NCBI GenBank assembly: GCA_964057225.1
Contig: OZ059898.1
Location: forward strand, 15,934,001 to 15,998,000
From: Auanema rhodensis
Lineage: Eukaryota; Animalia; Nematoda
DNA: 64,000 bases
Direction: 5' to 3'
In this document: positions 2,948 to 63,799 of the stretch, one piece after another
Layout of the letters: each line of letters starts with the position of its first letter
Position numbering within the stretch: the stretch's first letter is position 1
The notes under the pieces: model-generated
Database searches by the model: none
Seen by the model: the letters and a program-made list of their open reading frames with translations, nothing else
Told to the model about the DNA's origin: nothing
Position numbers and translations under genes: made by a program

Positions 2948-2953
2948 CTCGTC

Positions 2954-2961
2954 GGCCGGAG
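2954..2961 (+). promoter_or_regulatory. Putative polypurine-tract equivalent (GGCCGGAG) abutting the 3' LTR
   Basis: GGCCGGAG lies 7 bp after the stop codon and immediately before TGT at 2962. Short, imperfect G-rich PPTs are typical of BEL/Pao. Confidence 0.5.
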
Positions 2962-24152: not shown

Positions 24153-24163
24153 GTTCGCGTTCT

Positions 24164-24200
24164 TCTGGAGTCGAACGCGCTACCATTGCGCCAAGCAGTC
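24164..24200 (-). pseudogene. Truncated tRNA-Trp (5' half only, nt 1-37) at the satellite junction
   Basis: TCTGGAGTCG...CAAGCAGTC is present, but the 3' anticodon stem, T arm and 3' acceptor strand are replaced by the 200 bp satellite. Confidence 0.85.
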
Positions 24201-24363
24201 ATATTAGGGTTGCTTCGAAAGTGTTTCATAGCTGCAAATCTGAAATGCTTCATGAACATAAAAGTGGGAACAGAGTAAAAGTGTTTCATAACTGCAAATC
24301 TGAGATGCTTGATGAACATAAAAGTTAGAACAGAGTAAAATGAAGTTGCATCGACTTGTTTTT

Positions 24364-24368
24364 AAAAA
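24364..24368 (-). terminator. RNA polymerase III terminator (TTTTT), present in nearly every unit
   Basis: The minus strand reads ...GGTCA-AAA-TTTTT-AAAAA: a T5 run 3 nt after the discriminator base. Confidence 0.85.
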
Positions 24369-24371
24369 TTT

Positions 24372-24443
24372 TGACCACTGAGCGGATCGAACGCCCAACC
24401 TTTCGATCTGGAGTCGAACGCGCTACCATTGCGCCAAGCAGTC
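24372..24443 (-). tRNA. tRNA-Trp(CCA), first complete copy (representative of ~120 intact copies)
   Basis: Minus strand reads GACTGCTTGGCGCAATGGTAGCGCGTTCGACTCCAGATCGAAAGGTTGGGCGTTCGATCCGCTCAGTGGTCA. Acceptor stem GACTGCT/AGTGGTC, D stem GCGC/GCGC, anticodon arm TTCGA-CT CCA GA-TCGAA, T arm GGGCG-TTCGATC-CGCTC. No intron and no encoded CCA tail. It matches my recollection of the C. elegans cytosolic tRNA-Trp. Confidence 0.97.
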
Positions 24444-25160
24444 ATATTACGGTTGTTTCGAAAGTGTTTCATAGCTGCAAATCTGAAATGCTTCATGAAC
24501 ATAAAAGTTGGAACAGAGTAAAAGTGTTTCATAACTGCAAATCTGAGATGCTTCATGAACATAAAAGTTGGAACCGAGTAAAAGTGTTTCATAACTGCAA
24601 ATCTGAGATGCTTGATGAACATAAAAGTTAGAACAGAGTAAAATGAAGTTGCATCGACTTGTTTTTAAAAATTTTGACCACTGAGCGGATCGAACGCCCA
24701 ACCTTTCGATCTGGAGTCGAACGCGCTACCATTGCGCCAAGCAGTCATATTAGGGTTGCTTCGAAAGTGTTTCATAGCTGCAAATCTGAAATGCTTCATG
24801 AACATAAAAGTGGGAACAGAGTAAAAGTGTTTCATAACTGCAAATCTGAGATGCTTGATGAACATAAAAGTTAGAACAGAGTAAAATAAAGTTGCATCGA
24901 CTTGTTTTTAAAAATTTTGACCATTGAGCGGATCGAACGCCCAACCTTTCGATCTGGAGTCGAACGCGCTACCATTGCGCCAAGCAGTCATATTAGGGTT
25001 GCTTCGAAAGTGTTTCATAGCTGCAAATCTGAAATGCTTCATGAACATAAAAGTGGGAACAGAGTAAAAGTGTTTCATAACTGCAAATCTGAGATGCTTG
25101 ATGAACATAAAAGTTAGAACAGAGTAAAATGAAGTTGCATCGACTTGTTTTTAAAAATTT

Positions 25161-25226
25161 TGACCATTGAGCGGATCGAACGCCTTCGATCTGGAGTCGA
25201 ACGCGCTACCATTGCGCCAAGCAGTC
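25161..25226 (-). pseudogene. tRNA-Trp copy with a 6 bp deletion (variable loop/T stem) and an acceptor-stem mismatch
   Basis: GAACGCCTTCGATC instead of GAACGCCCAACCTTTCGATC; the unit is 237 bp rather than 243 bp. Also CCATTG instead of CCACTG. Confidence 0.8.
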
Positions 25227-28200
25227 ATATTACGGTTGTTTCGAAAGTGTTTCATAGCTGCAAATCTGAAATGCTTCATGAACATAAAAGTTGGAACCGA
25301 GTAAAAGTGCTTCATAACTGCAAATCTGAGATGCTTGATGAACATAAAAGTTAGAACAGAGTAAAATGAAGTTGCATCGACTTGTTTTTAAAAATTTTGA
25401 CCACTGAGCGGATCGAACGCCCAACCTTTCGATCTGGAGTCGAACGCGCTACCATTGCGCCAAGCAGTCATATTAGGGTTGCTTCCAAAGTGTTTCATAA
25501 CTGCAAATCTGAGATGCTTCATGAACATAAAAGTGGGAACAGAGTAAAAGTGTTTCATAACTGCAAATCTGAGATGCTTGATGAACATAAAAGTTAGAAC
25601 AGAGTAAAAGTGTTTCATAACTGCAAATCTGAGATGCTTGATGAACATAAAAGTTAGAACAGAGTAAAATGAAGTTGCATCGACTTGTTTTTAAAAATTT
25701 TGACCACTGAGCGGATCGAACGCCCAACCTTTCGATCTGGAGTCGAACGCGCTACCATTGCGCCAAGCAGTCATATTAGGGTTGCTTCGAAAGTGTTTCA
25801 TAGCTGCAAATCTGAAATGCTTCATGAACATAAAAGTGGGAACAGAGTAAAAGTGTTTCATAACTGCAAATCTGAGATGCTTGATGAACATAAAAGTTAG
25901 AACAGAGTAAAATGAAGTTGCATCGACTTGTTTTTAAAAATTTTGACCACTGAGCGGATCGAACGCCCAACCTTTCGATCTGGAGTCGAACGCGCTACCA
26001 TTGCGCCAAGCAGTCATATTACGGTTGTTTCGAAAGTGTTTCATAGCTGCAAATCTGAAATGCTTCATGAACATAAAAGTTGGAACAGAGTAAAAGTGTT
26101 TCATAACTGCAAATCTGAGATGCTTCATGAACATAAAAGTTGGAACCGAGTAAAAGTGTTTCATAACTGCAAATCTGAGATGCTTGATGAACATAAAAGT
26201 TAGAACAGAGTAAAATGAAGTTGCATCGACTTGTTTTTAAAAATTTTGACCACTGAGCGGATCGAACGCCCAACCTTTCGATCTGGAGTCGAACGCGCTA
26301 CCATTGCGCCAAGCAGTCATATTAGGGTTGCTTCGAAAGTGTTTCATAGCTGCAAATCTGAAATGCTTCATGAACATAAAAGTGGGAACAGAGTAAAAGT
26401 GTTTCATAACTGCAAATCTGAGATGCTTGATGAACATAAAAGTTAGAACAGAGTAAAATAAAGTTGCATCGACTTGTTTTTAAAAATTTTGACCATTGAG
26501 CGGATCGAACGCCCAACCTTTCGATCTGGAGTCGAACGCGCTACCATTGCGCCAAGCAGTCATATTAGGGTTGCTTCGAAAGTGTTTCATAGCTGCAAAT
26601 CTGAAATGCTTCATGAACATAAAAGTGGGAACAGAGTAAAAGTGTTTCATAACTGCAAATCTGAGATGCTTGATGAACATAAAAGTTAGAACAGAGTAAA
26701 ATGAAGTTGCATCGACTTGTTTTTAAAAATTTTGACCATTGAGCGGATCGAACGCCCAACCTTTCGATCTGGAGTCGAACGCGCTACCATTGCGCCAAGC
26801 AGTCATATTACGGTTGTTTCGAAAGTGTTTCATAGCTGCAAATCTGAAATGCTTCATGAACATAAAAGTTGGAACCGAGTAAAAGTGCTTCATAACTGCA
26901 AATCTGAGATGCTTGATGAACATAAAAGTTAGAACAGAGTAAAATGAAGTTGCATCGACTTGTTTTTAAAAATTTTGACCACTGAGCGGATCGAACGCCC
27001 AACCTTTCGATCTGGAGTCGAACGCGCTACCATTGCGCCAAGCAGTCATATTAGGGTTGCTTCCAAAGTGTTTCATAACTGCAAATCTGAGATGCTTCAT
27101 GAACATAAAAGTGGGAACAGAGTAAAAGTGTTTCATAACTGCAAATCTGAGATGCTTGATGAACATAAAAGTTAGAACAGAGTAAAATGAAGTTGCATCG
27201 ACTTGTTTTTAAAAATTTTGACCACTGAGCGGATCGAACGCCCAACCTTTCGATCTGGAGTCGAACGCGCTACCATTGCGCCAAGCAGTCATATTAGGGT
27301 TGCTTCGAAAGTGTTTCATAGCTGCAAATCTGAAATGCTTCATGAACATAAAAGTGGGAACAGAGTAAAAGTGTTTCATAACTGCAAATCTGAGATGCTT
27401 GATGAACATAAAAGTTAGAACAGAGTAAAATGAAGTTGCATCGACTTGTTTTTAAAAATTTTGACCACTGAGCGGATCGAACGCCCAACCTTTCGATCTG
27501 GAGTCGAACGCGCTACCATTGCGCCAAGCAGTCATATTAGGGTTGCTTCGAAAGTGTTTCATAGCTGCAAATCTGAAATGCTTCATGAACATAAAAGTGG
27601 GAACAGAGTAAAAGTGTTTCATAACTGCAAATCTGAGATGCTTGATGAACATAAAAGTTAGAACAGAGTAAAATGAAGTTGCATCGACTTGTTTTTAAAA
27701 ATTTTGACCACTGAGCGGATCGAACGCCCAACCTTTCGATCTGGAGTCGAACGCGCTACCATTGCGCCAAGCAGTCATATTAGGGTTGCTTCGAAAGTGT
27801 TTCATAGCTGCAAATCTGAAATGCTTCATGAACATAAAAGTGGGAACAGAGTAAAAGTGTTTCATAACTGCAAAATCTGAGATGCTTCATGAACATAAAA
27901 GTTAGAACAGAGTAAAATGAAGTTGCATCGACTTGTTTTCAAAAATTTTGACCACTGAGCGGATCGAACGCCCAACCTTTCGATCTGGAGTCGAACGCGC
28001 TACCATTGCGCCAAGCAGTCAAATTAGGGTTGCTTCCAAAGTGTTTCATAACTGCAAATCTGAGATGCTTCATGAACATACAAGTTGGAACAGAATAAAA
28101 CTGTTTCATAACTGCAAATCTGAAATGCTTCATGAACATAAAAGTTGGAACCGAGTAAAAGTGTTTCATAACTGCAAATCTGAGATGCTTGATGAACATA

Positions 28201-31200: not shown

Positions 31201-31346
31201 TCATAACTGCAAATCTGAGATGCTTCATGAACTTACAAGTTGGAACAGAGTAATAGTGTTTCATAACTACAAATCTGAGATGCTTCATGAACATAAAAGT
31301 TGGAACAGAGTAAAATGAAGTTGCATCGACTTGTTTTTAAAAATTT

Positions 31347-31417
31347 TGACCACTGAGCGGATCGAACGCCCAACTTTCGATCTGGAGTCGAACGCGCTAC
31401 CATTGCGCCAAGCAGTC
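31347..31417 (-). pseudogene. tRNA-Trp copy with a 1 bp deletion in the variable loop
   Basis: CCCAACTTTCGA instead of CCCAACCTTTCGA. It could also be a sequencing error, or still be functional. Confidence 0.45.
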
Positions 31418-34400: not shown

Positions 34401-37400
34401 CAGAGTAAAAGTGTTTCATAACTGCAAATCTGAGATGCTTCATGAACATAAAAGTTGGAACAGAGTAAAATGAAGTTGCATCGACTTGTTTTTAAAAATT
34501 TTGACCACTGAGCGGATCGAACGCCCAACCTTTCGATCTGGAGTCGAACGCGCTACCATTGCGCCAAGCAGTCATATTAGGGTTGCTTCCAAAGTGTTTC
34601 ATAACTGCAAATCTGAGATGCTTCATGAACATAAAAGTTGGAACAGAGTAAAAGTGTTTCATAACTGCAAATCTGAGATGCTTCATGAACATAAAAGTTG
34701 GAACAGAGTAAAAGTGTTTCATAACTGCAAATCTGAGATGCTTCATGAACATAAAAGTTGGAACAGAGTAAAATGAAGTTGCATCGACTTGTTTTTAAAA
34801 ATTTTGACCACTGAGCGGATCGAACGCCCAACCTTTCGATCTGGAGTCGAACGCGCTACCATTGCGCCAAGCAGTCATATTAGGGTTGCTTCCAAAGTGT
34901 TTCATAACTGCAAATCTGAGATGCTTCATGAACTTACAAGTTGGAACAGAGTAATAGTGTTTCATAACTACAAATCTGAGATGCTTCATGAACATAAAAG
35001 TTGGAACAGAGTAAAATGAAGTTGCATCGACTTGTTTTTAAAAATTTTGACCACTGAGCGGATCGAACGCCCAACCTTTCGATCTGGAGTCGAACGCGCT
35101 ACCATTGCGCCAAGCAGTCATATTAGGGTTGCTTCCAAAGTGTTTCATAACTGCAAATCTGAGATGCTTCATGAACATAAAAGTTGGAACAGAGTAAAAG
35201 TGTTTCATAACTGCAAATCTGAGATGCTTCATGAACATAAAAGTTGGAACAGAGTAAAATGAAGTTGCATCGACTTGTTTTTAAAAATTTTGACCACTGA
35301 GCGGATCGAACGCCCAACCTTTCGATCTGGAGTCGAACGCGCTACCATTGCGCCAAGCAGTCATATTAGGGTTGCTTCCAAAGTGTTTCATAACTGCAAA
35401 TCTGAGATGCTTCATGAACTTACAAGTTGGAACAGAGTAATAGTGTTTCATAACTACAAATCTGAGATGCTTCATGAACATAAAAGTTGGAACAGAGTAA
35501 AATGAAGTTGCATCGACTTGTTTTTAAAAATTTTGACCACTGAGCGGATCGAACGCCCAACCTTTCGATCTGGAGTCGAACGCGCTACCATTGCGCCAAG
35601 CAGTCATATTAGGGTTGCTTCCAAAGTGTTTCATAACTGCAAATCTGAGATGCTTCATGAACATAAAAGTTCGAACAGAGTGAAATGAAGTTGCATCGAC
35701 TTGTTTTTAAAAATTTTGACCACTGAGCGGATCGAACGCCCAACATTTCGATCTGGAGTCGAACGCGCTACCATTGCGCCAAGCAGTCATATTAGGGTTG
35801 CTTCCAAAGTGTTTCATAACTGCAAATCTGAGATGCTTCATGAACTTACAAGTTGGAACAGAGTAAAAGTGTTTCATAACTGCAAATCTGAGATGCTTCA
35901 TGAACATAAAAGTTGGAACAGAGTAAAAGTGTTTCATAACTGCAAATCTGAGATGCTTCATGAAAATTAAAGTTGGAACAGAGTAAAAGTGTTTCATAAC
36001 TACAAATCTGAGATGCTTCATGAAAATAAAAGTTGGAACAGAGTAAAATGAAGTTGCATCGACTTGTTTTTAAAAATTTTGACCACTGAGCGGATTGAAC
36101 GCCCAACCTTTCGATCTGGAGTCGAACGCGCTACCATTGCGCCAAGCAGTCATATTAGGGTTGCTTCCAAAGTGTTTCATAACTGCAAATCTGAGATGCT
36201 TCATGAACATAAAAGTTCGAACAGAGTGAAATGAAGTTGCATCGACTTGTTTTTAAAAATTTTGACCACTGAGCGGATCGAACGCCCAACATTTCGATCT
36301 GGAGTCGAACGCGCTACCATTGCGCCAAGCAGTCATATTAGGGTTGCTTCCAAAGTGTTTCATAACTGCAAATCTGAGATGCTTCATGAACTTACAAGTT
36401 GGAACAGAGTAAAAGTGTTTCATAACTGCAAATCTGAGATGCTTCATGAACATAAAAGTTGGAACAGAGTAAAAGTGTTTCATAACTGCAAATCTGAGAT
36501 GCTTCATGAAAATTAAAGTTGGAACAGAGTAAAAGTGTTTCATAACTACAAATCTGAGATGCTTCATGAAAATAAAAGTTGGAACAGAGTAAAATGAAGT
36601 TGCATCGACTTGTTTTTAAAAATTTTGACCACTGAGCGGATCGAACGCCCAACCTTTCGATCTGGAGTCGAACGCGCTACCATTGCGCCAAGCAGTCATA
36701 TTAGGGTTGCTTCCAAAGTGTTTCATAACTGCAAATCTGAGATGCTTCATGAACATACAAGTTGGAACAGAGTAAAAGTGTTTCATAACTGCAAATCTGA
36801 GATGCTTCATGAACATAAAAGTTGGAACAGAGTAAAATGAAGTTGCATCGACTTGTTTTTAAAAATTTTGACCACTGAGCGGATCGAACGCCCAACCTTT
36901 CGATCTGGAGTCGAACGCGCTACCATTGCGCCAAGCAGTCATATTAGGGTTGCTTCCAAAGTGTTTCATAACTGCAAATCTGAGATGCTTCATGAACATA
37001 AAAGTTGGAACAGAGTAAAAGTGTTTCATAACTGCAAATCTGAGATGCTTCATGAACATAAAAGTTGGGACAGAGTAAAAGTGTTTCATAACTGCAAATC
37101 TGAGATGCTTCATGAACATAAAAGTTGGAACAGAGTAAAATGAAGTTGCATCGACTTGTTTTTAAAAATTTTGACCACTGAGCGGATCGAACGCCCAACC
37201 TTTCGATCTGGAGTCGAACGCGCTACCATTGCGCCAAGCAGTCATATTAGGGTTGCTTCCAAAGTGTTTCATAACTGCAAATCTGAGATGCTTCATGAAC
37301 ATAAAAGTTGGAACAGAGTAAAACTGTTTCATAACTGCAAATCTGAGATGCTTCATGAACATAAAAGTTGGAACAGAGTAAAAGTGTTTCATAACTGCAA

Positions 37401-40400
37401 ATCTGAGATGCTTCATGAACATAAAAGTTGGAACAGAGTAAAAGTGTTTCATAACTGCAAATCTGAGATGCTTCATGAACATAAAAGTTGGAACAGAGTA
37501 AAAGTGTTTCATAACTGCAAATCTGAGATGCTTCATGAACATAAAAGTTGGAACAGAGTAAAATGAAGTTGCATCGACTTGTTTTTAAAAATTTTGACCA
37601 CTGAGCGGATCGAACACCCAACCTTTCGATCTGGAGTCGAACGCGCTACCATTGCGCCAAGCAGTCATATTAGGGTTGCTTCCAAAGTGTTTCATAACTG
37701 CAAATCTGAGATGCTTCATGAACATAAAAGTTGGAACAGAGTAAAAGTGTTTCATAACTGCAAATCTGAGATGCTTCATGAACATAAAAGTTGGAACAGA
37801 GTAAAAGTGTTTCATAACTGCAAATCTGAGATGCTTCATGAACATAAAAGTTGGAACAGAGTAAAATGAAGTTGCATCGACTTGTTTTTAAAAATTTTGA
37901 CCACTGAGCGGATCGAACGCCCAACCTTTCGATCTGGAGTCGAACGCGCTACCATTGCGCCAAGCAGTCATATTAGGGTTGCTTCCAAAGTGTTTCATAA
38001 CTGCAAATCTGAGATGCTTCATGAACTTACAAGTTGGAACAGAGTAATAGTGTTTCATAACTACAAATCTGAGATGCTTCATGAACATAAAAGTTGGAAC
38101 AGAGTAAAATGAAGTTGCATCGACTTGTTTTTAAAAATTTTGACCACTGAGCGGATCGAACGCCCAACCTTTCGATCTGGAGTCGAACGCGCTACCATTG
38201 CGCCAAGCAGTCATATTAGGGTTGCTTCCAAAGTGTTTCATAACTGCAAATCTGAGATGCTTCATGAACATAAAAGTTCGAACAGAGTGAAATGAAGTTG
38301 CATCGACTTGTTTTTAAAAATTTTGACCACTGAGCGGATCGAACGCCCAACATTTCGATCTGGAGTCGAACGCGCTACCATTGCGCCAAGCAGTCATATT
38401 AGGGTTGCTTCCAAAGTGTTTCATAACTGCAAATCTGAGATGCTTCATGAACTTACAAGTTGGAACAGAGTAAAAGTGTTTCATAACTGCAAATCTGAGA
38501 TGCTTCATGAACATAAAAGTTGGAACAGAGTAAAAGTGTTTCATAACTGCAAATCTGAGATGCTTCATGAAAATTAAAGTTGGAACAGAGTAAAAGTGTT
38601 TCATAACTACAAATCTGAGATGCTTCATGAAAATAAAAGTTGGAACAGAGTAAAATGAAGTTGCATCGACTTGTTTTTAAAAATTTTGACCACTGAGCGG
38701 ATCGAACGCCCAACCTTTCGATCTGGAGTCGAACGCGCTACCATTGCGCCAAGCAGTCATATTAGGGTTGCTTCCAAAGTGTTTCATAACTGCAAATCTG
38801 AGATGCTTCATGAACATACAAGTTGGAACAGAGTAAAAGTGTTTCATAACTGCAAATCTGAGATGCTTCATGAACATAAAAGTTGGAACAGAGTAAAATG
38901 AAGTTGCATCGACTTGTTTTTAAAAATTTTGACCACTGAGCGGATCGAACGCCCAACCTTTCGATCTGGAGTCGAACGCGCTACCATTGCGCCAAGCAGT
39001 CATATTAGGGTTGCTTCCAAAGTGTTTCATAACTGCAAATCTGAGATGCTTCATGAACATAAAAGTTGGAACAGAGTAAAAGTGTTTCATAACTGCAAAT
39101 CTGAGATGCTTCATGAACATAAAAGTTGGGACAGAGTAAAAGTGTTTCATAACTGCAAATCTGAGATGCTTCATGAACATAAAAGTTGGAACAGAGTAAA
39201 ATGAAGTTGCATCGACTTGTTTTTAAAAATTTTGACCACTGAGCGGATCGAACGCCCAACCTTTCGATCTGGAGTCGAACGCGCTACCATTGCGCCAAGC
39301 AGTCATATTAGGGTTGCTTCCAAAGTGTTTCATAACTGCAAATCTGAGATGCTTCATGAACATAAAAGTTGGAACAGAGTAAAACTGTTTCATAACTGCA
39401 AATCTGAGATGCTTCATGAACATAAAAGTTGGAACAGAGTAAAAGTGTTTCATAACTGCAAATCTGAGATGCTTCATGAACATAAAAGTTGGAACAGAGT
39501 AAAAGTGTTTCATAACTGCAAATCTGAGATGCTTCATGAACATAAAAGTTGGAACAGAGTAAAAGTGTTTCATAACTGCAAATCTGAGATGCTTCATGAA
39601 CATAAAAGTTGGAACAGAGTAAAATGAAGTTGCATCGACTTGTTTTTAAAAATTTTGACCACTGAGCGGATCGAACACCCAACCTTTCGATCTGGAGTCG
39701 AACGCGCTACCATTGCGCCAAGCAGTCATATTAGGGTTGCTTCCAAAGTGTTTCATAACTGCAAATCTGAGATGCTTCATGAACATAAAAGTTGGAACAG
39801 AGTAAAAGTGTTTCATAACTGCAAATCTGAGATGCTTCATGAACATAAAAGTTGGAACAGAGTAAAAGTGTTTCATAACTGCAAATCTGAGATGCTTCAT
39901 GAACATAAAAGTTGGAACAGAGTAAAAGTGTTTCATAACTGCAAATCTGAGATGCTTCATGAACATAAAAGTTGGAACAGAGTAAAATGAAGTTGCATCG
40001 ACTTGTTTTTAAAAATTTTGACCACTGAGCGGATCGAACGCCCAACCTTTCGATCTGGAGTCGAACGCGCTACCATTGCGCCAAGCAGTCATATTAGGGT
40101 TGCTTCCAAAGTGTTTCATAACTGCAAATCTGAGATGCTTCATGAACTTACAAGTTGGAACAGAGTAATAGTGTTTCATAACTACAAATCTGAGATGCTT
40201 CATGAACATAAAAGTTGGAACAGAGTAAAATGAAGTTGCATCGACTTGTTTTTAAAAATTTTGACCACTGAGCGGATCGAACGCCCAACCTTTCGATCTG
40301 GAGTCGAACGCGCTACCATTGCGCCAAGCAGTCATATTAGGGTTGCTTCCAAAGTGTTTCATAACTGCAAATCTGAGATGCTTCATGAACATAAAAGTTC

Positions 40401-43400
40401 GAACAGAGTGAAATGAAGTTGCATCGACTTGTTTTTAAAAATTTTGACCACTGAGCGGATCGAACGCCCAACATTTCGATCTGGAGTCGAACGCGCTACC
40501 ATTGCGCCAAGCAGTCATATTAGGGTTGCTTCCAAAGTGTTTCATAACTGCAAATCTGAGATGCTTCATGAACTTACAAGTTGGAACAGAGTAAAAGTGT
40601 TTCATAACTGCAAATCTGAGATGCTTCATGAACATAAAAGTTGGAACAGAGTAAAAGTGTTTCATAACTGCAAATCTGAGATGCTTCATGAAAATTAAAG
40701 TTGGAACAGAGTAAAAGTGTTTCATAACTACAAATCTGAGATGCTTCATGAAAATAAAAGTTGGAACAGAGTAAAATGAAGTTGCATCGACTTGTTTTTA
40801 AAAATTTTGACCACTGAGCGGATCGAACGCCCAACCTTTCGATCTGGAGTCGAACGCGCTACCATTGCGCCAAGCAGTCATATTAGGGTTGCTTCCAAAG
40901 TGTTTCATAACTGCAAATCTGAGATGCTTCATGAACATACAAGTTGGAACAGAGTAAAAGTGTTTCATAACTGCAAATCTGAGATGCTTCATGAACATAA
41001 AAGTTGGAACAGAGTAAAATGAAGTTGCATCGACTTGTTTTTAAAAATTTTGACCACTGAGCGGATCGAACGCCCAACCTTTCGATCTGGAGTCGAACGC
41101 GCTACCATTGCGCCAAGCAGTCATATTAGGGTTGCTTCCAAAGTGTTTCATAACTGCAAATCTGAGATGCTTCATGAACATAAAAGTTGGAACAGAGTAA
41201 AAGTGTTTCATAACTGCAAATCTGAGATGCTTCATGAACATAAAAGTTGGGACAGAGTAAAAGTGTTTCATAACTGCAAATCTGAGATGCTTCATGAACA
41301 TAAAAGTTGGAACAGAGTAAAATGAAGTTGCATCGACTTGTTTTTAAAAATTTTGACCACTGAGCGGATCGAACGCCCAACCTTTCGATCTGGAGTCGAA
41401 CGCGCTACCATTGCGCCAAGCAGTCATATTAGGGTTGCTTCCAAAGTGTTTCATAACTGCAAATCTGAGATGCTTCATGAACATAAAAGTTGGAACAGAG
41501 TAAAACTGTTTCATAACTGCAAATCTGAGATGCTTCATGAACATAAAAGTTGGAACAGAGTAAAAGTGTTTCATAACTGCAAATCTGAGATGCTTCATGA
41601 ACATAAAAGTTGGAACAGAGTAAAAGTGTTTCATAACTGCAAATCTGAGATGCTTCATGAACATAAAAGTTGGAACAGAGTAAAAGTGTTTCATAACTGC
41701 AAATCTGAGATGCTTCATGAACATAAAAGTTGGAACAGAGTAAAATGAAGTTGCATCGACTTGTTTTTAAAAATTTTGACCACTGAGCGGATCGAACACC
41801 CAACCTTTCGATCTGGAGTCGAACGCGCTACCATTGCGCCAAGCAGTCATATTAGGGTTGCTTCCAAAGTGTTTCATAACTGCAAATCTGAGATGCTTCA
41901 TGAACATAAAAGTTGGAACAGAGTAAAAGTGTTTCATAACTGCAAATCTGAGATGCTTCATGAACATAAAAGTTGGAACAGAGTAAAAGTGTTTCATAAC
42001 TGCAAATCTGAGATGCTTCATGAACATAAAAGTTGGAACAGAGTAAAATGAAGTTGCATCGACTTGTTTTTAAAAATTTTGACCACTGAGCGGATCGAAC
42101 GCCCAACCTTTCGATCTGGAGTCGAACGCGCTACCATTGCGCCAAGCAGTCATATTAGGGTTGCTTCCAAAGTGTTTCATAACTGCAAATCTGAAATGCT
42201 TCATGAACATAAAAGTTGGAACAGAGTAAAAGTGTTTCATAACTGCAAATCTGAGATGCTTCATGAACATAAAAGTTGGAACAGAGTAAAAGTGTTTCAT
42301 AACTGCAAATCTGAGATGCTTCATGAACATAAAAGTTGGAACAGAGTAAAATGAAGTTGCATCGACTTGTTTTTAAAAATTTTGACCACTGAGCGGATCG
42401 AACGCCCAACCTTTCGATCTGGAGTCGAACGCGCTACCATTGCGCCAAGCAGTCATATTAGGGTTGCTTCCAAAGTGTTTCATAACTGCAAATCTGAGAT
42501 GCTTCATGAACTTACAAGTTGGAACAGAGTAAAAGTGTTTCATAACTGCAAATCTGAGATGCTTCATGAACATAAAAGTTGGAACAGAGTAAAATGAAGT
42601 TGCATCGACTTGTTTTTAAAAATTTTGACCACTGAGCGGATCGAACGCCCAACCTTTCGATCTGGAGTCGAACGCGCTACCATTGCGCCAAGCAGTCATA
42701 TTAGGGTTGCTTCCAAAGTGTTTCATAACTGCAAATCTGAGATGCTTCATGAACATAAAAGTTGGAACAGAGTAAAAGTGTTTCATAACTGCAAATCTGA
42801 GATGCTTCATGAACATACAAGTTGGAACAGAGTAAAAGTGTTTCATAACTGCAAATCTGAGATGCTTCATGAACATAAAAGTTGGAACAGAGTAAAATGA
42901 AGTTGCATCGACTTGTTTTTAAAAATTTTGACCACTGAGCGGATCGAACGCCCAACCTTTCGATCTGGAGTCGAACGCGCTACCATTGCGCCAAGCAGTC
43001 ATATTAGGGTTGCTTCCAAAGTGTTTCATAACTGCAAATCTGAGATGCTTCATGAACTTACAAGTTGGAACAGAGTAATAGTGTTTCATAACTACAAATC
43101 TGAGATGCTTCATGAACATAAAAGTTGGAACAGAGTAAAATGAAGTTGCATCGACTTGTTTTTAAAAATTTTGACCACTGAGCGGATCGAACGCCCAACC
43201 TTTCGATCTGGAGTCGAACGCGCTACCATTGCGCCAAGCAGTCATATTAGGGTTGCTTCCAAAGTGTTTCATAACTGCAAATCTGAGATGCCTCATGAAC
43301 ATAAAAGTTCGAACAGAGTGAAATGAAGTTGCATCGACTTGTTTTTAAAAATTTTGACCACTGAGCGGATCGAACGCCCAACCTTTCGATCTGGAGTCGA

Positions 43401-52400: not shown

Positions 52401-54145
52401 TTGGAACAGAGTAAAATGAAGTTGCATCGACTTGTTTTTAAAAATTTTGACCACTGAGCGGATCGAACGCCCAACCTTTCGATCTGGAGTCGAACGCGCT
52501 ACCATTGCGCCAAGCAGTCATATTAGGGTTGCTTCCAAAGTGTTTCATAACTGCAAATCTGAGATGCTTCATGAACTTACAAGTTGGAACAGATTAAAAG
52601 TGTTTCATAACTGCAAATCTGAGATGCTTCATGAACATAAAAGTTGGAACAGAGTAAAAGTGTTTCATAACTGCAAATCTGAGATGCTTCATGAAAATAA
52701 AAGTTGGAACAGAGTAAAAGTGTTTCATAACTACAAATCTGAGATGCTTCATGAACATAAAAGTTGGAACAGAGTAAAATGAAGTTGCATCGACTTGTTT
52801 TTAAAAATTTTGACCACTGAGCGGATCGAACGCCCAACCTTTCGATCTGGAGTCGAACGCGCTACCATTGCGCCAAGCAGTCATATTAGGGTTGCTTCCA
52901 AAGTGTTTCATAACTGCAAATCTGAGATGCTTCATGAACATACAAGTTGGAACAGAGTAAAAGTGTTTCATAACTGCAAATCTGAGATGCTTCATGAACA
53001 TAAAAGTTGGAACAGAGTAAAATGAAGTTGCATCGACTTGTTTTTAAAAATTTTGACCACTGAGCGGATCGAACGCCCAACCTTTCGATCTGGAGTCGAA
53101 CGCGCTACCATTGCGCCAAGCAGTCATATTAGGGTTGCTTCCAAAGTGTTTCATAACTGCAAATCTGAGATGCTTCATGAACATAAAAGTTGGAACAGAG
53201 TAAAAGTGTTTCATAACTGCAAATCTGAGATGCTTCATGAACATAAAAGTTGGAACAGAGTAAAATGAAGTTGCATCGACTTGTTTTTAAAAATTTTGAC
53301 CACTGAGCGGATCGAACGCCCAACCTTTCGATCTGGAGTCGAACGCGCTACCATTGCGCCAAGCAGTCATATTAGGGTTGCTTCCAAAGTGTTTCATAAC
53401 TGCAAATCTAAGATGCTTCATGAACATAAAAGTTGGAACAGAGTAAAAGTGTTTCATAACTGCAAATCTGAGATGCTTCATGAACATAAAAGTTGGAACA
53501 GAGTAAAATGAAGTTGCATCGACTTGTTTTTAAAAATTTTGACCACTGAGCGGATCGAACGCCCAACCTTTCGATCTGGAGTCGAACGCGCTACCATTGC
53601 GCCAAGCAGTCATTTTAGGGTTGCTTCCAAAGTGTTTCATAACTGCAAATCTGAGATGCTTCATGAACATAAAAGTTGGAACAGAGTAAAAGTGTTTCAT
53701 AACTGCAAATCTGAGATGCTTCATGAACATAAAAGTTGGAACAGAGTAAAAGTGTTTCATAACTGCAAATCTGAGATGCTTCATGAACATAAAAGTTGGA
53801 ACAGAGTAAAAGTGTTTCATAACTGCAAATCTGAGATGCTTCATGAACATAAAAGTTGGAACAGAGTAAAATGAAGTTGCATCGACTTGTTTTTAAAAAT
53901 TTTGACCACTGAGCGGATCGAACGCCCAACCTTTCGATCTGGAGTCGAACGCGCTACCATTGCGCCAAGCAGTCATATTAGGGTTGCTTCCAAAGTGTTT
54001 CATAACTGCAAATCTGAGATGCTTCATGAACTTACAAGTTGGAACAGAGTAATAGTGTTTCATAACTACAAATCTGAGATGCTTCATGAACATAAAAGTT
54101 GGAACAGAGTAAAATGAAGTTGCATCGACTTGTTTTTAAAAATTT

Positions 54146-54211
54146 TGACCACTGAGCGGATCGAACGCCCAACCTTTCGATCTGGAGTCGAACGCGCTAC
54201 CATTGCGCCAA
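54146..54211 (-). pseudogene. tRNA-Trp copy disrupted by the transposon (nt 7-72 here; nt 1-15 at 57622-57636)
   Basis: The tRNA sequence breaks at ...CATTGCGCCAA|GGTGTT and resumes after the element as TTGCGCCAAGCAGTC. Confidence 0.9.
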
Positions 54212-54355
54212 GGTGTTCATACTTGTACACCGAATACATGTACACAAATCGTACATTTTGACATATACACTATTATTTTACATATACGTTTTTTACATGT
54301 ACGCATTTCGTACGCCGTACACCGAATACAATAATATATGATAATTAGGTAAATC
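54212..54355 (+). repeat. Left terminal inverted repeat
   Basis: GGTGTTCATACTTGTACACCGAATACATGTACACAAATCGTAC...TAATTAGGTAAATC is the near-perfect reverse complement of 57482-57621, with few mismatches and small indels. Confidence 0.92.
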
Positions 54356-54541
54356 TTGAAATTCCCAAAATTTACACCCTAAAATTCAAATTTATATTTT
54401 CCAATACTTCTTTATTTAGGTTCTACATCTCACAGTTTGTTTCTTTACTATGTTCAAACCTTTGAACTTGTGTTTGTAATAGAACATGTTGTTTTTGTTC
54501 AAGTTTTGTTCATGAATTAAGATTCAAGGTGACGAAGTTTC

Positions 54542-57352
54542 ATGTCTTTCGAAAACTACCTTTTCTACATCAATAATGCTAGGTAGGATGGTATGATGTT
54601 TTACGATGTTAATTTTTTGGTAGTGACTCATGTGATGTGCTAAAAGAACTTCCTCTGTTATCTCAGTTCAATAAGAGGCTCATCTATTTTATCTTAGACC
54701 GAAACAGTGTCAAATCCATAAAAGACATAACGTATGATCATTATTCTCCTTGGTCAGGGAAATGTGAGTTGTTTTAATCAGTAGCTTTCTAATCTTTGTT
54801 TAGGTTCGTTTTCTTCCAAAAGAGAAACTTCAAAATGTACGCAGGTTAATATAAGTTTCTCTGGAAGTTTTTTTGAAATTAATGAAGATGGTATTTTCAC
54901 ATTAAAATTGATAAAAAATTCAAATCCTAAATATAAAGGGTTTAAAAGAGAGGTTCACAGATTTTTCAACCCTGTTAGTTAACCAGGATGTGTTCTTCAG
55001 ATTTTTTTTTGTGATAGATCAAAATAAGAATTTGATTTCGGATGTTTTTTACTTCTACATGACAGATGTATTTTTAAAACAATTTTTTCGTACTAGGTAT
55101 AACTACCAACTATTTTAGGTGGATTTGAACATTGACTGTTTTCAAAAAAAGAAAATACTGCCATCGCATGCTCATGAAATTCAGGAAGCTATGAAAAATA
55201 GAACAACCCTTGAAACTAAGAAGTTTTTGAAAGCTACTGGCATTGATGTTTCTTCGGCCCAGGTTGCAAACCGTTGGCTTCATATATCATTTTTATGTTT
55301 TTTCAGATACATAGTCTTTCTCGTACTGTTCCAGATCATGCTAAATTGAAGATGGGAAAAAAAGTTCCAACTGATGTTCATAAGCTGTTGGATAGTTTTT
55401 TACTGAAGCAAAATCGTCTTCAAGATATTCAAAGACCATTTATCGAAAATGGTAATATTTTTTTTATTTTTTCCTAACTATTTCTAATATAGTGACTTTC
55501 AACGGTCTATCAAAAATTGTCGTACGATATATCGTTGGTTTTCCAATTGCTATGAAATGTTTTATTGCTTCATTACCACTTGAAGAAGATGTCATTGATC
55601 ATAGAGAAAATTTGAGAGTTTTTGACAATCTTACTACAAGTCAAGCTTCTGAAGAAGTCAGTAAAACGTTTCATTTTTTTATTGTTAACAGTACAAACTA
55701 TTCAGACAAATATCTACGTACTGCTAATACATCAGGTTCAATATCTTCTCTTGTTACTTCAATTGTTCTGGATACTACGTTCTCAATATGCTCAGGAGAG
55801 TATCTTACTTTGGCTATTGGATTTTCAGAGCAATTTCGGTGAAAATAACAATCATTCAAAATTTATCTAATTTAGCTGCACTTTATCTGATAAGAATGGT
55901 TCAATTATTTTTGGATACATGATTCATTCCACTAAAATCGCAGACCATCACAACGAATTTTCAAATTTAGTGAAATTATTAAAATGCACTATAGTTTTCA
56001 TTAACAGATATCTAAATGAAAAAATGTTTTCAATGAACAAAGAAAAAATAGTTCCCTGTATAATCACCGATGGTGAAGACAGTTTTTCTGTCTATTCGAG
56101 AGGTTGTTTTTTTAGAAACACTTTGCATCTACGGTGCGCTGTTCATGTGATTAATAACATAAAAAGTGTTACAAATTGTCCTCAAACTACTGAAAGGGTG
56201 AAAAAAGAACTTCTGAAAGAAGTTCTGTGTATTCTCTAGGTTGTTCACTAATAAACAGATGCTATACAATACTTGTTCTATGCGAAAAAAACTAGAAGGT
56301 GGATGGTGTTTACAATTTCTAACTTCTAATATAATTGAGAGCCGGAACTCGGCTTTATAGAAAATGATTCCTACTGCTATTCCAGCAGAGAATGTTGTTA
56401 AAACTATGTTATCAATTCACGAACGTTTTTATTATTAACAACTTTTGAACTACAGTTGATAATTTCAGACGAGTTGAAAAACAGAGTCAACGCAGCCTGC
56501 GGAACAGGCTCATCCAACTTAACAACTTTGTTTTCAATTAATAAGGAAAGTTACATGAAATTAACACGTGCTCAGAAAATCAATCATTTGATTGGATTTG
56601 GGTTGGAAGAATATATGATAGAATCAAAATTCGCTCAGTTTCCGGATTGGTTTGTGAACGGTAAAAAAAAGAGAAGTAAAGTTTACTATAAACCTTCAGG
56701 AAACGGATCTGTTGATACGGAAATATTTATGAGAGAGGTTGAAAGTCTCCAAACGTATTCCACTAAGAGCGATAATTCTGTATTTTTCACATACAAAACG
56801 TTGACAATGGAGTAAGTTTTATACAGTATATATTGAAAAACCTTCTTATTGAAATATGCAGATCTACTAGGCTAATTTTCATGGAAAATAATTTGAAATG
56901 TTCAAGCAGTTTATGCAGAAAAGGCAAAGATTATGGTTTTTATATCTGTTCTCACATGTACGTTCAAAAGCTGATTCTATTTTTTAAATATTTACAGGCT
57001 CTCCGTGTTTTTAACTTTTGATATAGATAAAATAGAAGCCATCGTTAGTCATTATGATCAGAAAAGATCAGAAAGAACTACTAAACATTTACAACGTAGA
57101 CTTATTAGACCTAATGATGGAAGTAAATTTTCGAAAAGAAAAGGTAAAACATTCTCAAAATACAACCATCCAAGAACATTCGCTCGTTTGTCTAAGTAAG
57201 TAAAATTATAAATTCTAGTACATGCCAGTTATAGTGTTACTCACAGTTCAAGTTTCAATTCTAACAGCAGTTCTGCTTTATATGATGAAGAATGCGAAAA
57301 CAATTTTGAAATTCATCCCATCGATTACGATATGGAACTTACAAATTGGTGA
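54542..57352 (+). CDS. Multi-exon MULE-family DDE transposase (exon boundaries approximate; one possible frameshift)
   Basis: Successive ORF fragments carry MULE motifs in order: IVLDTTF (first D, 55771), FGYMIHSTK, CIITDGE (second D, 56069), HLRCAVH (CxxH, 56135-56146) and SWIM-like CSSSLC...ICSH (56899-56955). They are separated by ~40-50 bp GT..AG introns (e.g. 54583-54624, 54764-54803). AATAAA lies at ~57450. The catalytic E was not confidently located. Confidence 0.8.
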
Positions 57353-57481
57353 AACATATGTTTAAATTAAAACATAGTAATGAAGACTTGATGTAAACAA
57401 TACATTTAGAAAATTGAAATCATAACTTCGGTATCAAAATTAAGTATAACAATAAAAATAAAGTAAATTTTTTAATTTTAG

Positions 57482-57621
57482 GATTTACCTAATTATCATA
57501 TATGTATTCGGTGTACGGCGTACGAAATGCGTACATGTAGAAAACGTATATGTAAAATAATAGTGTATATGCCAAAATGTACGATTTGTGTACATGTATT
57601 CGGTGTACAAGTACAAAGGCC
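57482..57621 (-). repeat. Right terminal inverted repeat
   Basis: GATTTACCTAATTA...CATGTATTCGGTGTACAAGTACAAAGGCC; its reverse complement aligns with the left end. Confidence 0.92.
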
Positions 57622-60313
57622 TTGCGCCAAGCAGTCATATTAGGGTTGCTTCCAAAGTGTTTCATAACTGCAAATCTGAGATGCTTCATGAACATAAAAG
57701 TTGGAACAGAGTAAAAGTGTTTCATAACTGCAAATCTGAGATGCTTCATGAACATAAAAGTTGGAACAGAGTAAAAGTGTTTCATAACTGCAAATCTGAG
57801 ATGCTTCATGAACATAAAAGTTGGAACAGAGTAAAATGAAGTTGCATCGACTTGTTTTTAAAAATTTTGACCACTGAGCGGATCGAACGCCCAACCTTTC
57901 GATCTGGAGTCGAACGCGCTACCATTGCGCCAAGCAGTCATATTAGGGTTGCTTCCAAAGTGTTTCATAACTGCAAATCTGAGATGCTTCATGAACATAA
58001 AAGTTGGAACAGAGTAAAATGAAGTTGCATCGACTTGTTTTTAAAAATTTTGACCACTGAGCGGATCGAACGCCCAACCTTTCGATCTGGAGTCGAACGC
58101 GCTACCATTGCGCCAAGCAGTCATATTAGGGTTGCTTCCAAAGTGTTTCATAACTGCAAATCTAAGATGCTTCATGAACATAAAAGTTGGAACAGAGTAA
58201 AAGTGTTTCATAACTGCAAATCTGAGATGCTTCATGAACATAAAAGTTGGAACAGAGTAAAAGTGTTTCATAACTGCAAATCTGAGATGCTTCATGAACA
58301 TAAAAGTTGGAACAGAGTAAAATGAAGTTGCATCGACTTGTTTTTAAAAATTTTGACCACTGAGCGGATCGAACGCCCAACCTTTCGATCTGGAGTCGAA
58401 CGCGCTACCATTGCGCCAAGCAGTCATATTAGGGTTGCTTCCAAAGTGTTTCATAACTGCAAATCTGAGATGCTTCATGAACATAAAAGTTGGAACAGAG
58501 TAAAAGTGTTTCATAACTGCAAATCTGAGATGCTTCATGAACATAAAAGTTGGAACAGAGTAAAAGTGTTTCATAACTGCAAATCTGAGATGCTTCATGA
58601 ACATAAAAGTTGGAACAGAGTAAAATGAAGTTGCATCGACTTGTTTTTAAAAATTTTGACCACTGAGCGGATCGAACGCCCAACCTTTCGATCTGGAGTC
58701 GAACGCGCTACCATTGCGCCAAGCAGTCATATTAGGGTTGCTTCCAAAGTGTTTCATAACTGCAAATCTGAGATGCTTCATGAACATAAAAGTTGGAACA
58801 GAGTAAAAGTGTTTCATAACTGCAAATCTGAGATGCTTCATGAACATAAAAGTTGGAACAGAGTAAAAGTGTTTCATAACTGCAAATCTGAGATGCTTCA
58901 TGAACATAAAAGTTGGAACAGAGTATAAGTGTTTCATAACTGCAAATCTGAGATGCTTCATGAACATAAAAGTTGGAACAGAGTAAAAGTGTTTCATAAC
59001 TGCAAATCTGAGATGCTTCATGAACATAAAAGTTGGAACAGAGTAAAATGAAGTTGCATCGACTTGTTTTTAAAAATTTTGACCACTGAGCGGATCGAAC
59101 GCCCAACCTTTCGATCTGGAGTCGAACGCGCTACCATTGCGCCAAGCAGTCATATTAGGGTTGCTTCCAAAGTGTTTCATAACTGCAAATCTGAGATGCT
59201 TCATGAACATACAAGTTGGAACAGAGTAAAAGTGTTTCATAACTGCAAATCTGAGATGCTTCATGAACATAAAAGTTGGAACAGAGTAAAAGTGTTTCAT
59301 AACTGCAAATCTGAGATGCTTCATGAACATAAAAGTTGGAACAGAGTATAAGTGTTTCATAACTGCAAATCTGAGATGCTTCATGAACATAAAAGTTGGA
59401 ACAGAGTAAAAGTAACTGCAAATCTGAGATGCTTCATGAACATAAAAGTTGGAACAGAGTAAAATGAAGTTGCATCGACTTGTTTTTAAAAATTTTGACC
59501 ACTGAGCGGATCGAACGCCCAACCTTTCGATCTGGAGTCGAACGCGCTACCATTGCGCCAAGCAGTCATATTAGGGTTGCTTCCAAAGTGTTTCATAACT
59601 GCAAATCTGAGATGCTTCATGAACATACAAGTTGGAACAGAGTAAAAGTGTTTCATAACTGCAAATCTGAGATGCTTCATGAACATAAAAGTTGGAACAG
59701 AGTAAAATGAAGTTGCATCGACTTGTTTTTAAAAATTTTGACCACTGAGCGGATCGAACGCCCAACCTTTCGATCTGGAGTCGAACGCGCTACCATTGCG
59801 CCAAGCAGTCATATTAGGGTTGCTTCCAAAGTGTTTCATAACTGCAAATCTGAGATGCTTCATGAACTTACAAGTTGGCACAGAGTAAAAGTGTTTCATA
59901 ACTGCAAATCTGAGATGCTTCATGAACTTACAAGTTGGAACAGAGTAAAAGTGTTTCATAACTGCAAATCTGAGATGCTTCATGAACATAAAAGTTGGAA
60001 CAGAGTAAAAGTGTTTCATAACTGCAAATCTGAGATGCTTCATGAAAATAAAAGTTGGAACAGAGTAAAAGTGTTTCATAACTACAAATCTGAGATGCTT
60101 CATGAACATAAAAGTTGGAACAGAGTAAAAGTGTTTCATAACTGCAAATCTGAGATGCTTCATGAACATAAAAGTTGGAACAGAGTAAAATGAAGTTGCA
60201 TCGACTTGTTTTTAAAAATTTTGACCACTGAGCGGATCGAACGCCCAACCTTTCGATCTGGAGTCGAACGCGCTACCATTGCGCCAAGCAGTCATATTAG
60301 GGTTGCTTCCAAA

Positions 60314-60853
60314 GTGTTTCATAACTGCAAATCTGAGATGCTTCATGAACATAAAAGTTGGAACAGAGTAAAAGTGTTTCATAACTGCAAATCTGAGATG
60401 CTTCATGAACATAAAAGTTGGAACAGAGTAAAAGTGTTTCATAACTGCAAATCTGAGATGCTTCATGAACATAAAAGTTGGAACAGAGTAAAAGTGTTTC
60501 ATAACTGCAAATCTGAGATGCTTCATGAACATACAAGTTGGAACAGAGTAAAAGTGTTTCATAACTGCAAATCTGAGATGCTTCATGAACATAAAAGTTG
60601 GAACAGAGTAAAAGTGTTTCATAACTGCAAATCTGAGATGCTTCATGAACATAAAAGTTGGAACAGAGTAAAAGTGTTTCATAACTGCAAATCTGAGATG
60701 CTTCATGAACATAAAAGTTGGAACAGAGTATAAGTGTTTCATAACTGCAAATCTGAGATGCTTCATGAACATAAAAGTTGGAACAGAGTAAAAGTGTTTC
60801 ATAACTGCAAATCTGAGATGCTTCATGAACATAAAAGTTGGAACAGAGTAAAA
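60314..60853. repeat. 60 bp spacer sub-repeat (longest run, 9 copies); present 1-9 times in every tRNA unit
   Basis: GTGTTTCATAACTGCAAATCTGAGATGCTTCATGAACATAAAAGTTGGAACAGAGTAAAA is tandemly repeated. Unit 60206-60868 is 663 bp = 123 + 9x60. Confidence 0.95.
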
Positions 60854-63488
60854 TGAAGTTGCATCGACTTGTTTTTAAAAATTTTGACCACTGAGCGGAT
60901 CGAACGCCCAACCTTTCGATCTGGAGTCGAACGCGCTACCATTGCGCCAAGCAGTCATATTAGGGTTGCTTCCAAAGTGTTTCATAACTGCAAATCTGAG
61001 ATGCTTCATGAACTTACAAGTTGGAACAGAGTAAAAGTGTTTCATAACTGCAAATCTGAGATGCTTCATGAACATAAAAGTTGGAACAGAGTAAAAGTGT
61101 TTCATAACTGCAAATCTGAGATGCTTCATGAAAATAAAAGTTGGAACAGAGTAAAAGTGTTTCATAACTACAAATCTGAGATGCTTCATGAACATAAAAG
61201 TTGGAACAGAGTAAAATGAAGTTGCATCGACTTGTTTTTAAAAATTTTGACCACTGAGCGGATCGAACGCCCAACCTTTCGATCTGGAGTCGAACGCGCT
61301 ACCATTGCGCCAAGCAGTCATATTAGGGTTGCTTCCAAAGTGTTTCATAACTGCAAATCTGAGATGCTTCATGAACATACAAGTTGGAACAGAGTAAAAG
61401 TGTTTCATAACTGCAAATCTGAGATGCTTCATGAACATAAAAGTTGGAACAGAGTAAAATGAAGTTGCATCGACTTGTTTTTAAAAATTTTGACCACTGA
61501 GCGGATCGAACGCCCAACCTTTCGATCTGGAGTCGAACGCGCTACCATTGCGCCAAGCAGTCATATTAGGGTTGCTTCCAAAGTGTTTCATAACTGCAAA
61601 TCTGAGATGCTTCATGAACTTACAAGTTGGAACAGAGTAAAAGTGTTTCATAACTGCAAATCTGAGATGCTTCATGAAAATAAAAGTTGGAACAGAGTAA
61701 AAGTGTTTCATAACTACAAATCTGAGATGCTTCATGAACATAAAAGTTGGAACAGAGTAAAAGTGTTTCATAACTGCAAATCTGAGATGCTTCATGAACA
61801 TAAAAGTTGGAACAGAGTAAAATGAAGTTGCATCGACTTGTTTTTAAAAATTTTGACCACTGAGCGGATCGAACGCCCAACCTTTCGATCTGGAGTCGAA
61901 CGCGCTACCATTGCGCCAAGCAGTCATATTAGGGTTGCTTCCAAAGTGTTTCATAACTGCAAATCTGAGATGCTTCATGAACATACAAGTTGGAACAGAG
62001 TAAAAGTGTTTCATAACTGCAAATCTGAGATGCTTCATGAACATAAAAGTTGGAACAGAGTAAAATGAAGTTGCATCGACTTGTTTTTAAAAATTTTGAC
62101 CACTGAGCGGATCGAACGCCCAACCTTTCGATCTGGAGTCGAACGCGCTACCATTGCGCCAAGCAGTCATATTAGGGTTGCTTCCAAAGTGTTTCATAAC
62201 TGCAAATCTGAGATGCTTCATGAACATAAAAGTTGGAACAGAGTAAAAGTGTTTCATAACTGCAAATCTGAGATGCTTCATGAACATAAAAGTTGGAACA
62301 GAGTAAAAGTGTTTCATAACTGCAAATCTGAGATGCTTCATGAACATAAAAGTTGGAACAGAGTAAAAGTGTTTCATAACTGCAAATCTGAGATGCTTCA
62401 TGAACATACAAGTTGGAACAGAGTAAAAGTGTTTCATAACTGCAAATCTGAGATGCTTCATGAACATAAAAGTTGGAACAGAGTAGAATGAAGTTGCATC
62501 GACTTGTTTTTAAAAATTTTGACCACTGAGCGGATCGAACGCCCAACCTTTCGATCTGGAGTCGAACGCGCTACCATTGCGCCAAGCAGTCATATTAGGG
62601 TTGCTTCCAAAGTGTTTCATAACTGCAAATCTGAGATGCTTCATGAACTTACAAGTTGGAACAGAGTAAAAGTGTTTCATAACTGCAAATCTGAGATGCT
62701 TCATGAACATAAAAGTTGGAACAGAGTAAAAGTGTTTCATAACTGCAAATCTGAGATGCTTCATGAACATAAAAGTTGGAACAGAGTAAAATGAAGTTGC
62801 ATCGACTTGTTTTTAAAAATTTTGACCACTGAGCGGATCGAACGCCCAACCTTTCGATCTGGAGTCGAACGCGCTACCATTGCGCCAAGCAGTCATATTA
62901 GGGTTGCTTCCAAAGTGTTTCATAACTGCAAATCTGAGATGCTTCATGAACATACAAGTTGGAACAGAGTAAAAGTGTTTCATAACTGCAAATCTGAGAT
63001 GCTTCATGAACATAAAAGTTGGAACAGAGTAAAATGAAGTTGCATCGACTTGTTTTTAAAAATTTTGACCACTGAGCGGATCGAACGCCCAACCTTTCGA
63101 TCTGGAGTCGAACGCGCTACCATTGCGCCAAGCAGTCATATTAGGGTTGCTTCCAAAGTGTTTCATAACTGCAAATCTGAGATGCTTCATGAACATAAAA
63201 GTTGGAACAGAGTAAAAGTGTTTCATAACTGCAAATCTGAGATGCTTCATGAACATAAAAGTTGGAACAGAGTAAAAGTGTTTCATAACTGCAAATCTGA
63301 GATGCTTCATGAACATAAAAGTTGGAACAGAGTAAAAGTGTTTCATAACTGCAAATCTGAGATGCTTCATGAACATACAAGTTGGAACAGAGTAAAAGTG
63401 TTTCATAACTGCAAATCTGAGATGCTTCATGAACATAAAAGTTGGAACAGAGTAGAATGAAGTTGCATCGACTTGTTTTTAAAAATTT

Positions 63489-63560
63489 TGACCACTGAGC
63501 GGATCGAACGCCCAACCTTTCGATCTGGAGTCGAACGCGCTACCATTGCGCCAAGCAGTC
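63489..63560 (-). tRNA. tRNA-Trp(CCA), last copy in the window
   Basis: Same 72 nt sequence as the consensus copy. Confidence 0.97.
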
Positions 63561-63799
63561 ATATTAGGGTTGCTTCCAAAGTGTTTCATAACTGCAAATC
63601 TGAGATGCTTCATGAACTTACAAGTTGGAACAGAGTAAAAGTGTTTCATAACTGCAAATCTGAGATGCTTCATGAACATAAAAGTTGGAACAGAGTAAAA
63701 GTGTTTCATAACTGCAAATCTGAGATGCTTCATGAAAATAAAAGTTGGAACAGAGTAAAAGTGTTTCATAACTACAAATCTGAGATGCTTCATGAACAT

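Follow-up and report, generated by a model that had tools for sequence, protein, structure and literature searches.

A tandem array of intact tRNA-Trp(CCA) genes in the nematode Auanema rhodensis and its probable origin by recent amplification

What kind of element is a stretch of nematode DNA in which the same tRNA-Trp gene follows itself, unit after unit, for almost 40 kb: a set of working genes, a piece of chromosome architecture, or a satellite that happens to be built from a gene? The locus belongs to Auanema rhodensis (A. rhodense in the preprint cited below) and lies in a stretch of 64,000 nucleotides of contig OZ059898.1 (assembly GCA_964057225.1, positions 15,934,001 to 15,998,000 of the forward strand), which we call the window and whose own numbering is used for all positions. 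The original prediction described about 124 complete 72-nt tRNA-Trp(CCA) genes over about 36 kb, head-to-tail on the minus strand and for the most part identical, and our counts agree with this description closely. The array (coordinates of all features in Table 1) contains 125 minus-strand copies in head-to-tail order when a 12-nt anchor in the anticodon arm is counted. ARAGORN called 123 tRNA-Trp(CCA) genes from 24371 to 63561, all on the minus strand and with CCA as the anticodon of every tRNA called within the window, and an Rfam scan of the whole window returned 124 matches to RF00005 above its gathering score of 29 bits, most of them at 60.6 bits, and found no RNA family other than tRNA. 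The array extends over 39.6 kb including a 3.4-kb insertion, leaving about 36.2 kb of array proper, and within it 104 of the 125 copies are identical across all 72 nt, with one or two substitutions each in 15 further full-length copies. In the canonical copy, which has the anticodon CCA and carries A73, every helix is built from standard or G-U pairs only. A minimum-energy fold of the single tRNA sequence did not yield the cloverleaf; this result was given no weight, in view of the high score that the cloverleaf receives from the covariance model. That this is a real array of intact tRNA-Trp genes is almost certain, and 125 copies of one tRNA gene go far beyond ordinary need, as had been proposed.

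Each unit had also been predicted to carry its own A box, B box and T5 terminator, and all three can be read from the sequence. Going by the consensus sequences of these boxes, we take TGGCGCAATGG at tRNA positions 8-18 to be the A box and GTTCGATCC in the T arm to be the B box. The tRNA contains no internal T4 run, and in 123 of the 125 copies it is followed by AAA and then by a T5 run that begins 4 nt past the discriminator base. Upstream, the leader ends in CCCTAATAT in 117 of the 125 copies. From these features we infer that the array genes are competent for RNA polymerase III (Pol III), and about 115 of the 125 appear, by sequence, to be functional, with a predicted intact cloverleaf, the CCA anticodon, both promoter boxes and the T5 terminator. 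Neither the full tRNA nor its 36-nt core had an exact match in the metagenome contigs scanned.

The repeat unit has two parts. The first is a 123-bp module in which the 72-nt tRNA is preceded by a 17-nt leader and followed by a 34-nt trailer that includes the T5; the second, after the module, is a 60-bp minisatellite (the 60-mer) in one to nine copies. The lengths of the units are accordingly quantised as 123 + 60n bp, with 45 units of 243 bp, 34 of 303 bp, 17 of 363 bp, 11 of 183 bp and eight of 423 bp, so that the spacers are themselves repeat-containing through a variable number of minisatellite copies, in the manner known from Entamoeba and as the original prediction had suggested. A derivation of the 60-mer from the tRNA module or from the neighboring 200-bp satellite was rejected, local alignment scores being within those of shuffled controls. 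When the 60-mer variants were labelled and the array was read as a string, a larger block structure became visible. A block of seven tRNA units is present three times, and the tRNA variant found at 37595, 39656 and 41777 travels with it; at the left edge, a further block is duplicated, as tested by comparing 24220-25119 with 25792-26691. The leftmost 4 kb are also the most diverged part of the array and contain edge-specific 60-mer variants; the differences there number 2.25 per 60-mer, compared with 0.5-0.8 further in, and 1.7 per module, compared with 0-0.7.

These observations show that the array turns over on two scales: gain and loss of 60-mers yields the quantised units, and blocks of several units (1.6-2.1 kb) are duplicated together with the sequence variants that they contain. 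Spacer slippage, unequal exchange spanning several units and a less homogenised edge are textbook behavior of satellite DNA, and the higher-order repeats, diverged edge and high homogeneity by which a satellite shaped by unequal exchange is recognized are all found here. The block duplications together with the diverged edge are signatures of unequal exchange or replication slippage accompanied by concerted evolution.

The possibility of an assembly artefact, in which a few copies had been inflated into many, had been raised together with the original prediction, and read depth was proposed there as a check. Contigs from four sequencing runs were placed on 53900-58200, a region that includes a transposon embedded in the array. 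The transposon interior was recovered as one 3,078-bp contig at a depth of 61.8 in run X2 and as one 2,153-bp contig at 17.7 in run X8, and the contigs that join the transposon to the tRNA have similar depths, namely 69.6 in X2 (57503-57651) and 25.5 in X8 (54185-54330), the latter being a borderline case with exactly 31 letters on the tRNA side, the minimum for counting as a bridge. These junction contigs recur in independent runs, and by contig depth in two studies the transposon insertion seems to be nearly single-copy. In X1, X2 and X8, which come from three studies, the depth of the array bins exceeds that of the transposon by a factor of roughly 130 to 1,200, where the values refer to assembled contigs, whose summed depth is not equal to copy number; the order of magnitude fits the approximately 125 modules and 340 60-mers of the window. 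Because array words exceed the embedded transposon in depth several hundred-fold in three independent studies, the array is not an assembly artefact, and the depth check lends no support to a handful of inflated copies.

Loose ends of contigs from these data link the tRNA termini to unrelated flanks, which suggests that the arrayed tRNA-Trp sequence also exists as dispersed genes, with the qualification that, in the runs labelled organism C, some of the tRNA-joined flanks could come from other organisms in the sample. As a separate observation, the three runs X8, X10 and X11, which belong to one study and are of similar size, differ in the share of sampled words of 53900-58200 that they contain (0.86, 0.27 and 0.12, respectively), and the transposon depth is 17.7 in X8 vs about 5 in X10. 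These differences could reflect the germline fraction, or equally sequencing depth or strain; they are suggestive, but they cannot be normalised and are not used here as evidence of elimination.

The condition of the individual copies bears on whether the array is alive. About 10 copies are damaged, comprising stem-pair variants, two copies with deletions, one truncated copy and one split copy; the stem-breaking variants are of three types in seven full-length copies, and one of these types is also present in the copy with the 6-nt deletion. A decayed tRNA-derived repeat, such as a SINE-like (short interspersed nuclear element) or pseudogene satellite, would have lost the cloverleaf, the anticodon or the promoter boxes in most copies, and this is not seen here, where 104 copies are both identical and intact and few are damaged. 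More broadly, we regard it as highly improbable that the locus is a dead tRNA-derived satellite of heterochromatic pseudogenes or an artefact inflating a few copies. The position of the array between a satellite and transposons would suit a dead satellite, as would the H3K9me3 reported on the bodies of eliminated DNA in A. rhodense (bioRxiv 10.64898/2026.08.27.747507), but the roughly 115 copies recognized as intact by Rfam and ARAGORN are unlike decayed tRNA-derived repeats, and only 215 of the 19,554 tRNA loci of A. rhodense are classed as pseudogenes (bioRxiv 10.64898/2026.08.27.747507). An artefact, for its part, is very unlikely given the ordered variants and block structure among the copies, in addition to the depth contrast described above.

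We favor, with a probability of roughly 0.7, the interpretation that the locus is a young, still-homogenising tandem amplification of a genuine tRNA-Trp(CCA) gene and one of many tRNA arrays in this nematode genome. The original prediction had offered three functional guesses, namely a structural chromosome element, a source of tRNA fragments and germline-limited DNA. The last alone has outside support, through the A. rhodense preprint on tRNA arrays in eliminated repeats (bioRxiv 10.64898/2026.08.27.747507), and the original interpretation as a whole is partly supported. In that work, the germline assembly comprises 180.9 Mb, of which about 61% is eliminated from somatic cells from the 12-cell stage, and the germline-restricted tandem repeats include 5S rRNA, several tRNA loci and U2 arrays; the authors propose that repeats accumulate passively in eliminated DNA, where selection is weak (bioRxiv 10.64898/2026.08.27.747507). 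The tRNA-Trp array is moderately likely to be eliminated from the soma. It would then be located in the repeat-rich DNA that somatic cells lose at about the 12-cell stage, any action of the array would be confined to the germline and the earliest embryo, and its size would reflect amplification in a weakly selected compartment rather than tryptophan demand. The tRNA genes may themselves seed such arrays. Pol III complexes stall replication forks and invite unequal repair, which is a plausible cause of tRNA arrays.

Several observations weigh against this interpretation. The stretch is present in 11 DNA runs from three studies and in 0 RNA runs. Because 0 RNA runs contain it, transcription can be judged from sequence signals only, and on these we give an even chance that the array is transcribed in the germline. 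Between 30 and 40 kb, 36 tRNA genes give a local density of about 26% per 10 kb, which is above the ceiling given in the preprint, according to which the density of non-coding RNA is always below 20% per 10 kb (bioRxiv 10.64898/2026.08.27.747507). The remaining points concern the degree to which the tRNA sequence is under constraint. The 34-nt trailer matches the tRNA in uniformity, with 0.27% and 0.21% differences per site per copy, respectively, vs 1.07% in the leader and 1.37% in the 60-mers, and the contrast between tRNA and 60-mers is inflated by position-specific 60-mer variants. Moreover, variants that break stem pairs (G66A, G61A and C51G in linear numbering) are present, and two of the three have been copied along with their blocks.

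Some signal of constraint is nevertheless found in the distribution of segregating sites, which were counted in 121 ungapped copies. The tRNA has seven such sites in 72 positions, the trailer seven in 34, the leader seven in 17, and two adjacent 60-mers 24 and 18 in 60 each. By Fisher test, the tRNA differs from leader and trailer combined (7/72 vs 14/51, P=0.014) and from all flanks (7/72 vs 56/171, P=1e-4). Positions 1-43 of the tRNA, comprising the A box, the D arm and the anticodon arm, are invariant in the 121 copies, and all seven variable sites are within positions 44-72, for which the naive probability is (29/72)^7, or about 0.002. We consider that there may be some, modest constraint on the tRNA, weak at best because the stem-breaking variants have been copied.

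The same data bear on the main rival explanation, in which the array is an adaptive germline dosage of tRNA genes: an oocyte-type Pol III reserve that would serve a large germline and a transcriptionally quiet early embryo, with elimination acting as a permanent somatic off-switch. The model for this idea is Xenopus, in which the oocyte-type 5S genes and tandem tRNA clusters provide very many Pol III genes that serve oogenesis and are off in the soma. Xenopus differs in that silencing takes place through chromatin and the DNA is not discarded, and in that several kinds of tRNA gene are combined in its tRNA repeat unit. The intact genes with their promoters and terminators would be expected of such a reserve, as would lower variability in the tRNA than in the adjoining leader and trailer, and 5S and U2 arrays are likewise found in the eliminated DNA (bioRxiv 10.64898/2026.08.27.747507). 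Against these points, tryptophan is rare among amino acids, stem-breaking variants and deletions have remained in the array and been copied, selection on one copy among hundreds is extremely weak, and the authors of the preprint prefer passive accumulation under weak selection. On balance, we judge an adaptive reserve to be unlikely, and passive amplification of a genuine gene remains the preferred interpretation.

Less likely again is a structural role. Here, dense TFIIIC sites would form a condensin or cohesin loading block, a boundary, a meiotic pairing site or a centromere-like block, irrespective of whether tRNA is made. With 125 A and B boxes, one pair every 290 bp or so, the array would constitute a very dense putative TFIIIC platform; the tRNA arrays of Entamoeba are located at one end of every chromosome, and chromosome-specific repeat blocks have been speculated to aid homologue pairing in A. 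rhodense (bioRxiv 10.64898/2026.08.27.747507). The sequence beyond the tRNA genes gives no hint of a binding platform, however, and we consider this explanation improbable, at nearly the same low level as a dead satellite.

The surroundings of the array are repetitive throughout the window, which comprises, from left to right, a long terminal repeat (LTR) element, 20.7 kb of satellite, the array and a further element (Table 1). The transposon within the array is flanked by a 10-bp target duplication (54203-54212 and 57622-57631) that covers tRNA positions 6-15 and thus overlaps the A box, and the split tRNA copy to its left retains A box, B box and terminator, having lost its first five bases. 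The spliced transposon gene matched the Pfam MULE domain only at E=0.08, and the term MULE-like remains a description only for this 3.4-kb element. The 200-bp satellite that precedes the array is unrelated to the tRNA module and to the 60-mer, and four published A. rhodense probes for fluorescence in situ hybridization (AT-1, XR-1, XT-2 and XT-1) had no match within three mismatches in the whole window. At the junction of satellite and array (24150-24200), the last satellite copy ends in an altered form, GTTCGCGTTCT, whose GCGTTC is an inverted match to GAACGC in the nearby tRNA; this pair may be a fold-back or microhomology scar. At the left end of the window, the 952-aa open reading frame (ORF) contains the Pfam domain Phlebovirus_G2, a fusion domain (E=1.5e-81), and we interpret it as an LTR retroelement envelope gene; an exact look-up of the protein returned no record. 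The approximately 460 bp of non-coding sequence that follow, up to 3412, are probably the LTR, with putative boundaries.

Table 1. Positions of the array, of selected tRNA copies and of neighboring elements, in window coordinates.
Feature	Position	Strand	Basis or remark
3' part of LTR retroelement	89..3412	(+)	intact 952-aa envelope-like ORF 89-2947, adjoins satellite
200-bp satellite, 103.7 copies, 94% matches	3413..24157	.	repeat analysis
tRNA-Trp(CCA) gene array	24164..63799	(-)	ARAGORN, Rfam, anchor count, unit analysis
Truncated tRNA copy, left array end	24164..24200	(-)	ends after tRNA position 37, joined directly to 200-bp satellite
Left-edge block duplicated, lag 1572 bp	24220..26692	(-)	900 bp tested, 100% match
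Canonical 72-nt tRNA-Trp example	24372..24443	(-)	Rfam 60.6 bits, ARAGORN
Damaged tRNA copy, 6-nt deletion in variable/T-arm region	25161..25226	(-)	Rfam 33.5 bits
tRNA copy with 1-nt deletion	31347..31417	(-)	anchor count
Higher-order repeat, seven-tRNA-unit block (2061 or 2121 bp) x3	about 36020..42040	(-)	at least 99% identity
Transposon-split tRNA copy	54146..54217	(-)	Rfam 47.9 bits
MULE-like DNA transposon, 3.4 kb	54213..57621	(+)	~122-nt terminal inverted repeats (95% complementary)
Non-array sequence interrupting a 60-mer at right end	63800..64000	.	sequence reading

Among described systems, the closest case is that of the tRNA arrays in the A. rhodense preprint, which reports thousands of intact tRNA loci and tandem tRNA blocks within eliminated megabase repeat blocks; its main text is without the isotype, unit anatomy or copy number of these arrays (bioRxiv 10.64898/2026.08.27.747507). 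The best-studied analogue is Entamoeba, the only source from which tandem tRNA repeats were known in a 2010 survey (PMC2888827). Its arrays account for a sizeable part of the genome and for most of the tRNA genes, and they share with the A. rhodensis array the head-to-tail order of intact tRNA genes and the variable spacers of short tandem repeats (PMC2652664; bioRxiv 10.64898/2026.07.06.736064). A unit in Entamoeba contains from one to five different tRNA genes, sometimes together with 5S; the A. rhodensis array has one gene of a single isotype per unit, a number within this range. The Entamoeba spacers are microsatellite-like, in contrast to the 60-bp minisatellite found here, and the present host is an animal. 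Two further cases are more distant. On chromosome 1 of Arabidopsis thaliana, pre-tRNA genes have likewise expanded in tandem through local duplication, but that array is far smaller and of mixed type, with 27 triplet units and 81 genes (PMC2886086), and is not known to be linked to DNA elimination. At human 1q23.3, a tandem repeat with tRNA genes varies in copy number and has been proposed as a boundary element, but its unit measures 7.3 kb and binds CTCF, and there are only 9-43 units per allele (PMC4041453).

Thus, the existence of tRNA arrays in A. rhodense was already known in outline, and what the present locus adds is the anatomy of the unit, turnover on two scales, an approximate but independent check of copy number and a weak signal of constraint. 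The genome as a whole appears to have about thirty times more tRNA genes than that of Caenorhabditis elegans, for which 820 tDNAs have been reported (PMC2888827). It is conceivable, if rather doubtful, that the species maintains two sets of tRNA genes: a small dispersed set present in every cell, and a huge arrayed set, with at least 125 genes for tRNA-Trp, that would be available in the germline and the first cleavages only and would then be discarded by elimination. If this were true, elimination would be the off-switch for an oocyte-type Pol III reserve and the DNA-level counterpart of the oocyte/somatic 5S switch of Xenopus. The wider question posed by the array is whether such arrays are junk in discarded DNA or a germline-only supply of translation components. 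Since the array has its own leader and trailer, its transcripts could be distinguished from those of dispersed tRNA-Trp genes, which makes the choice between supply and junk directly testable.

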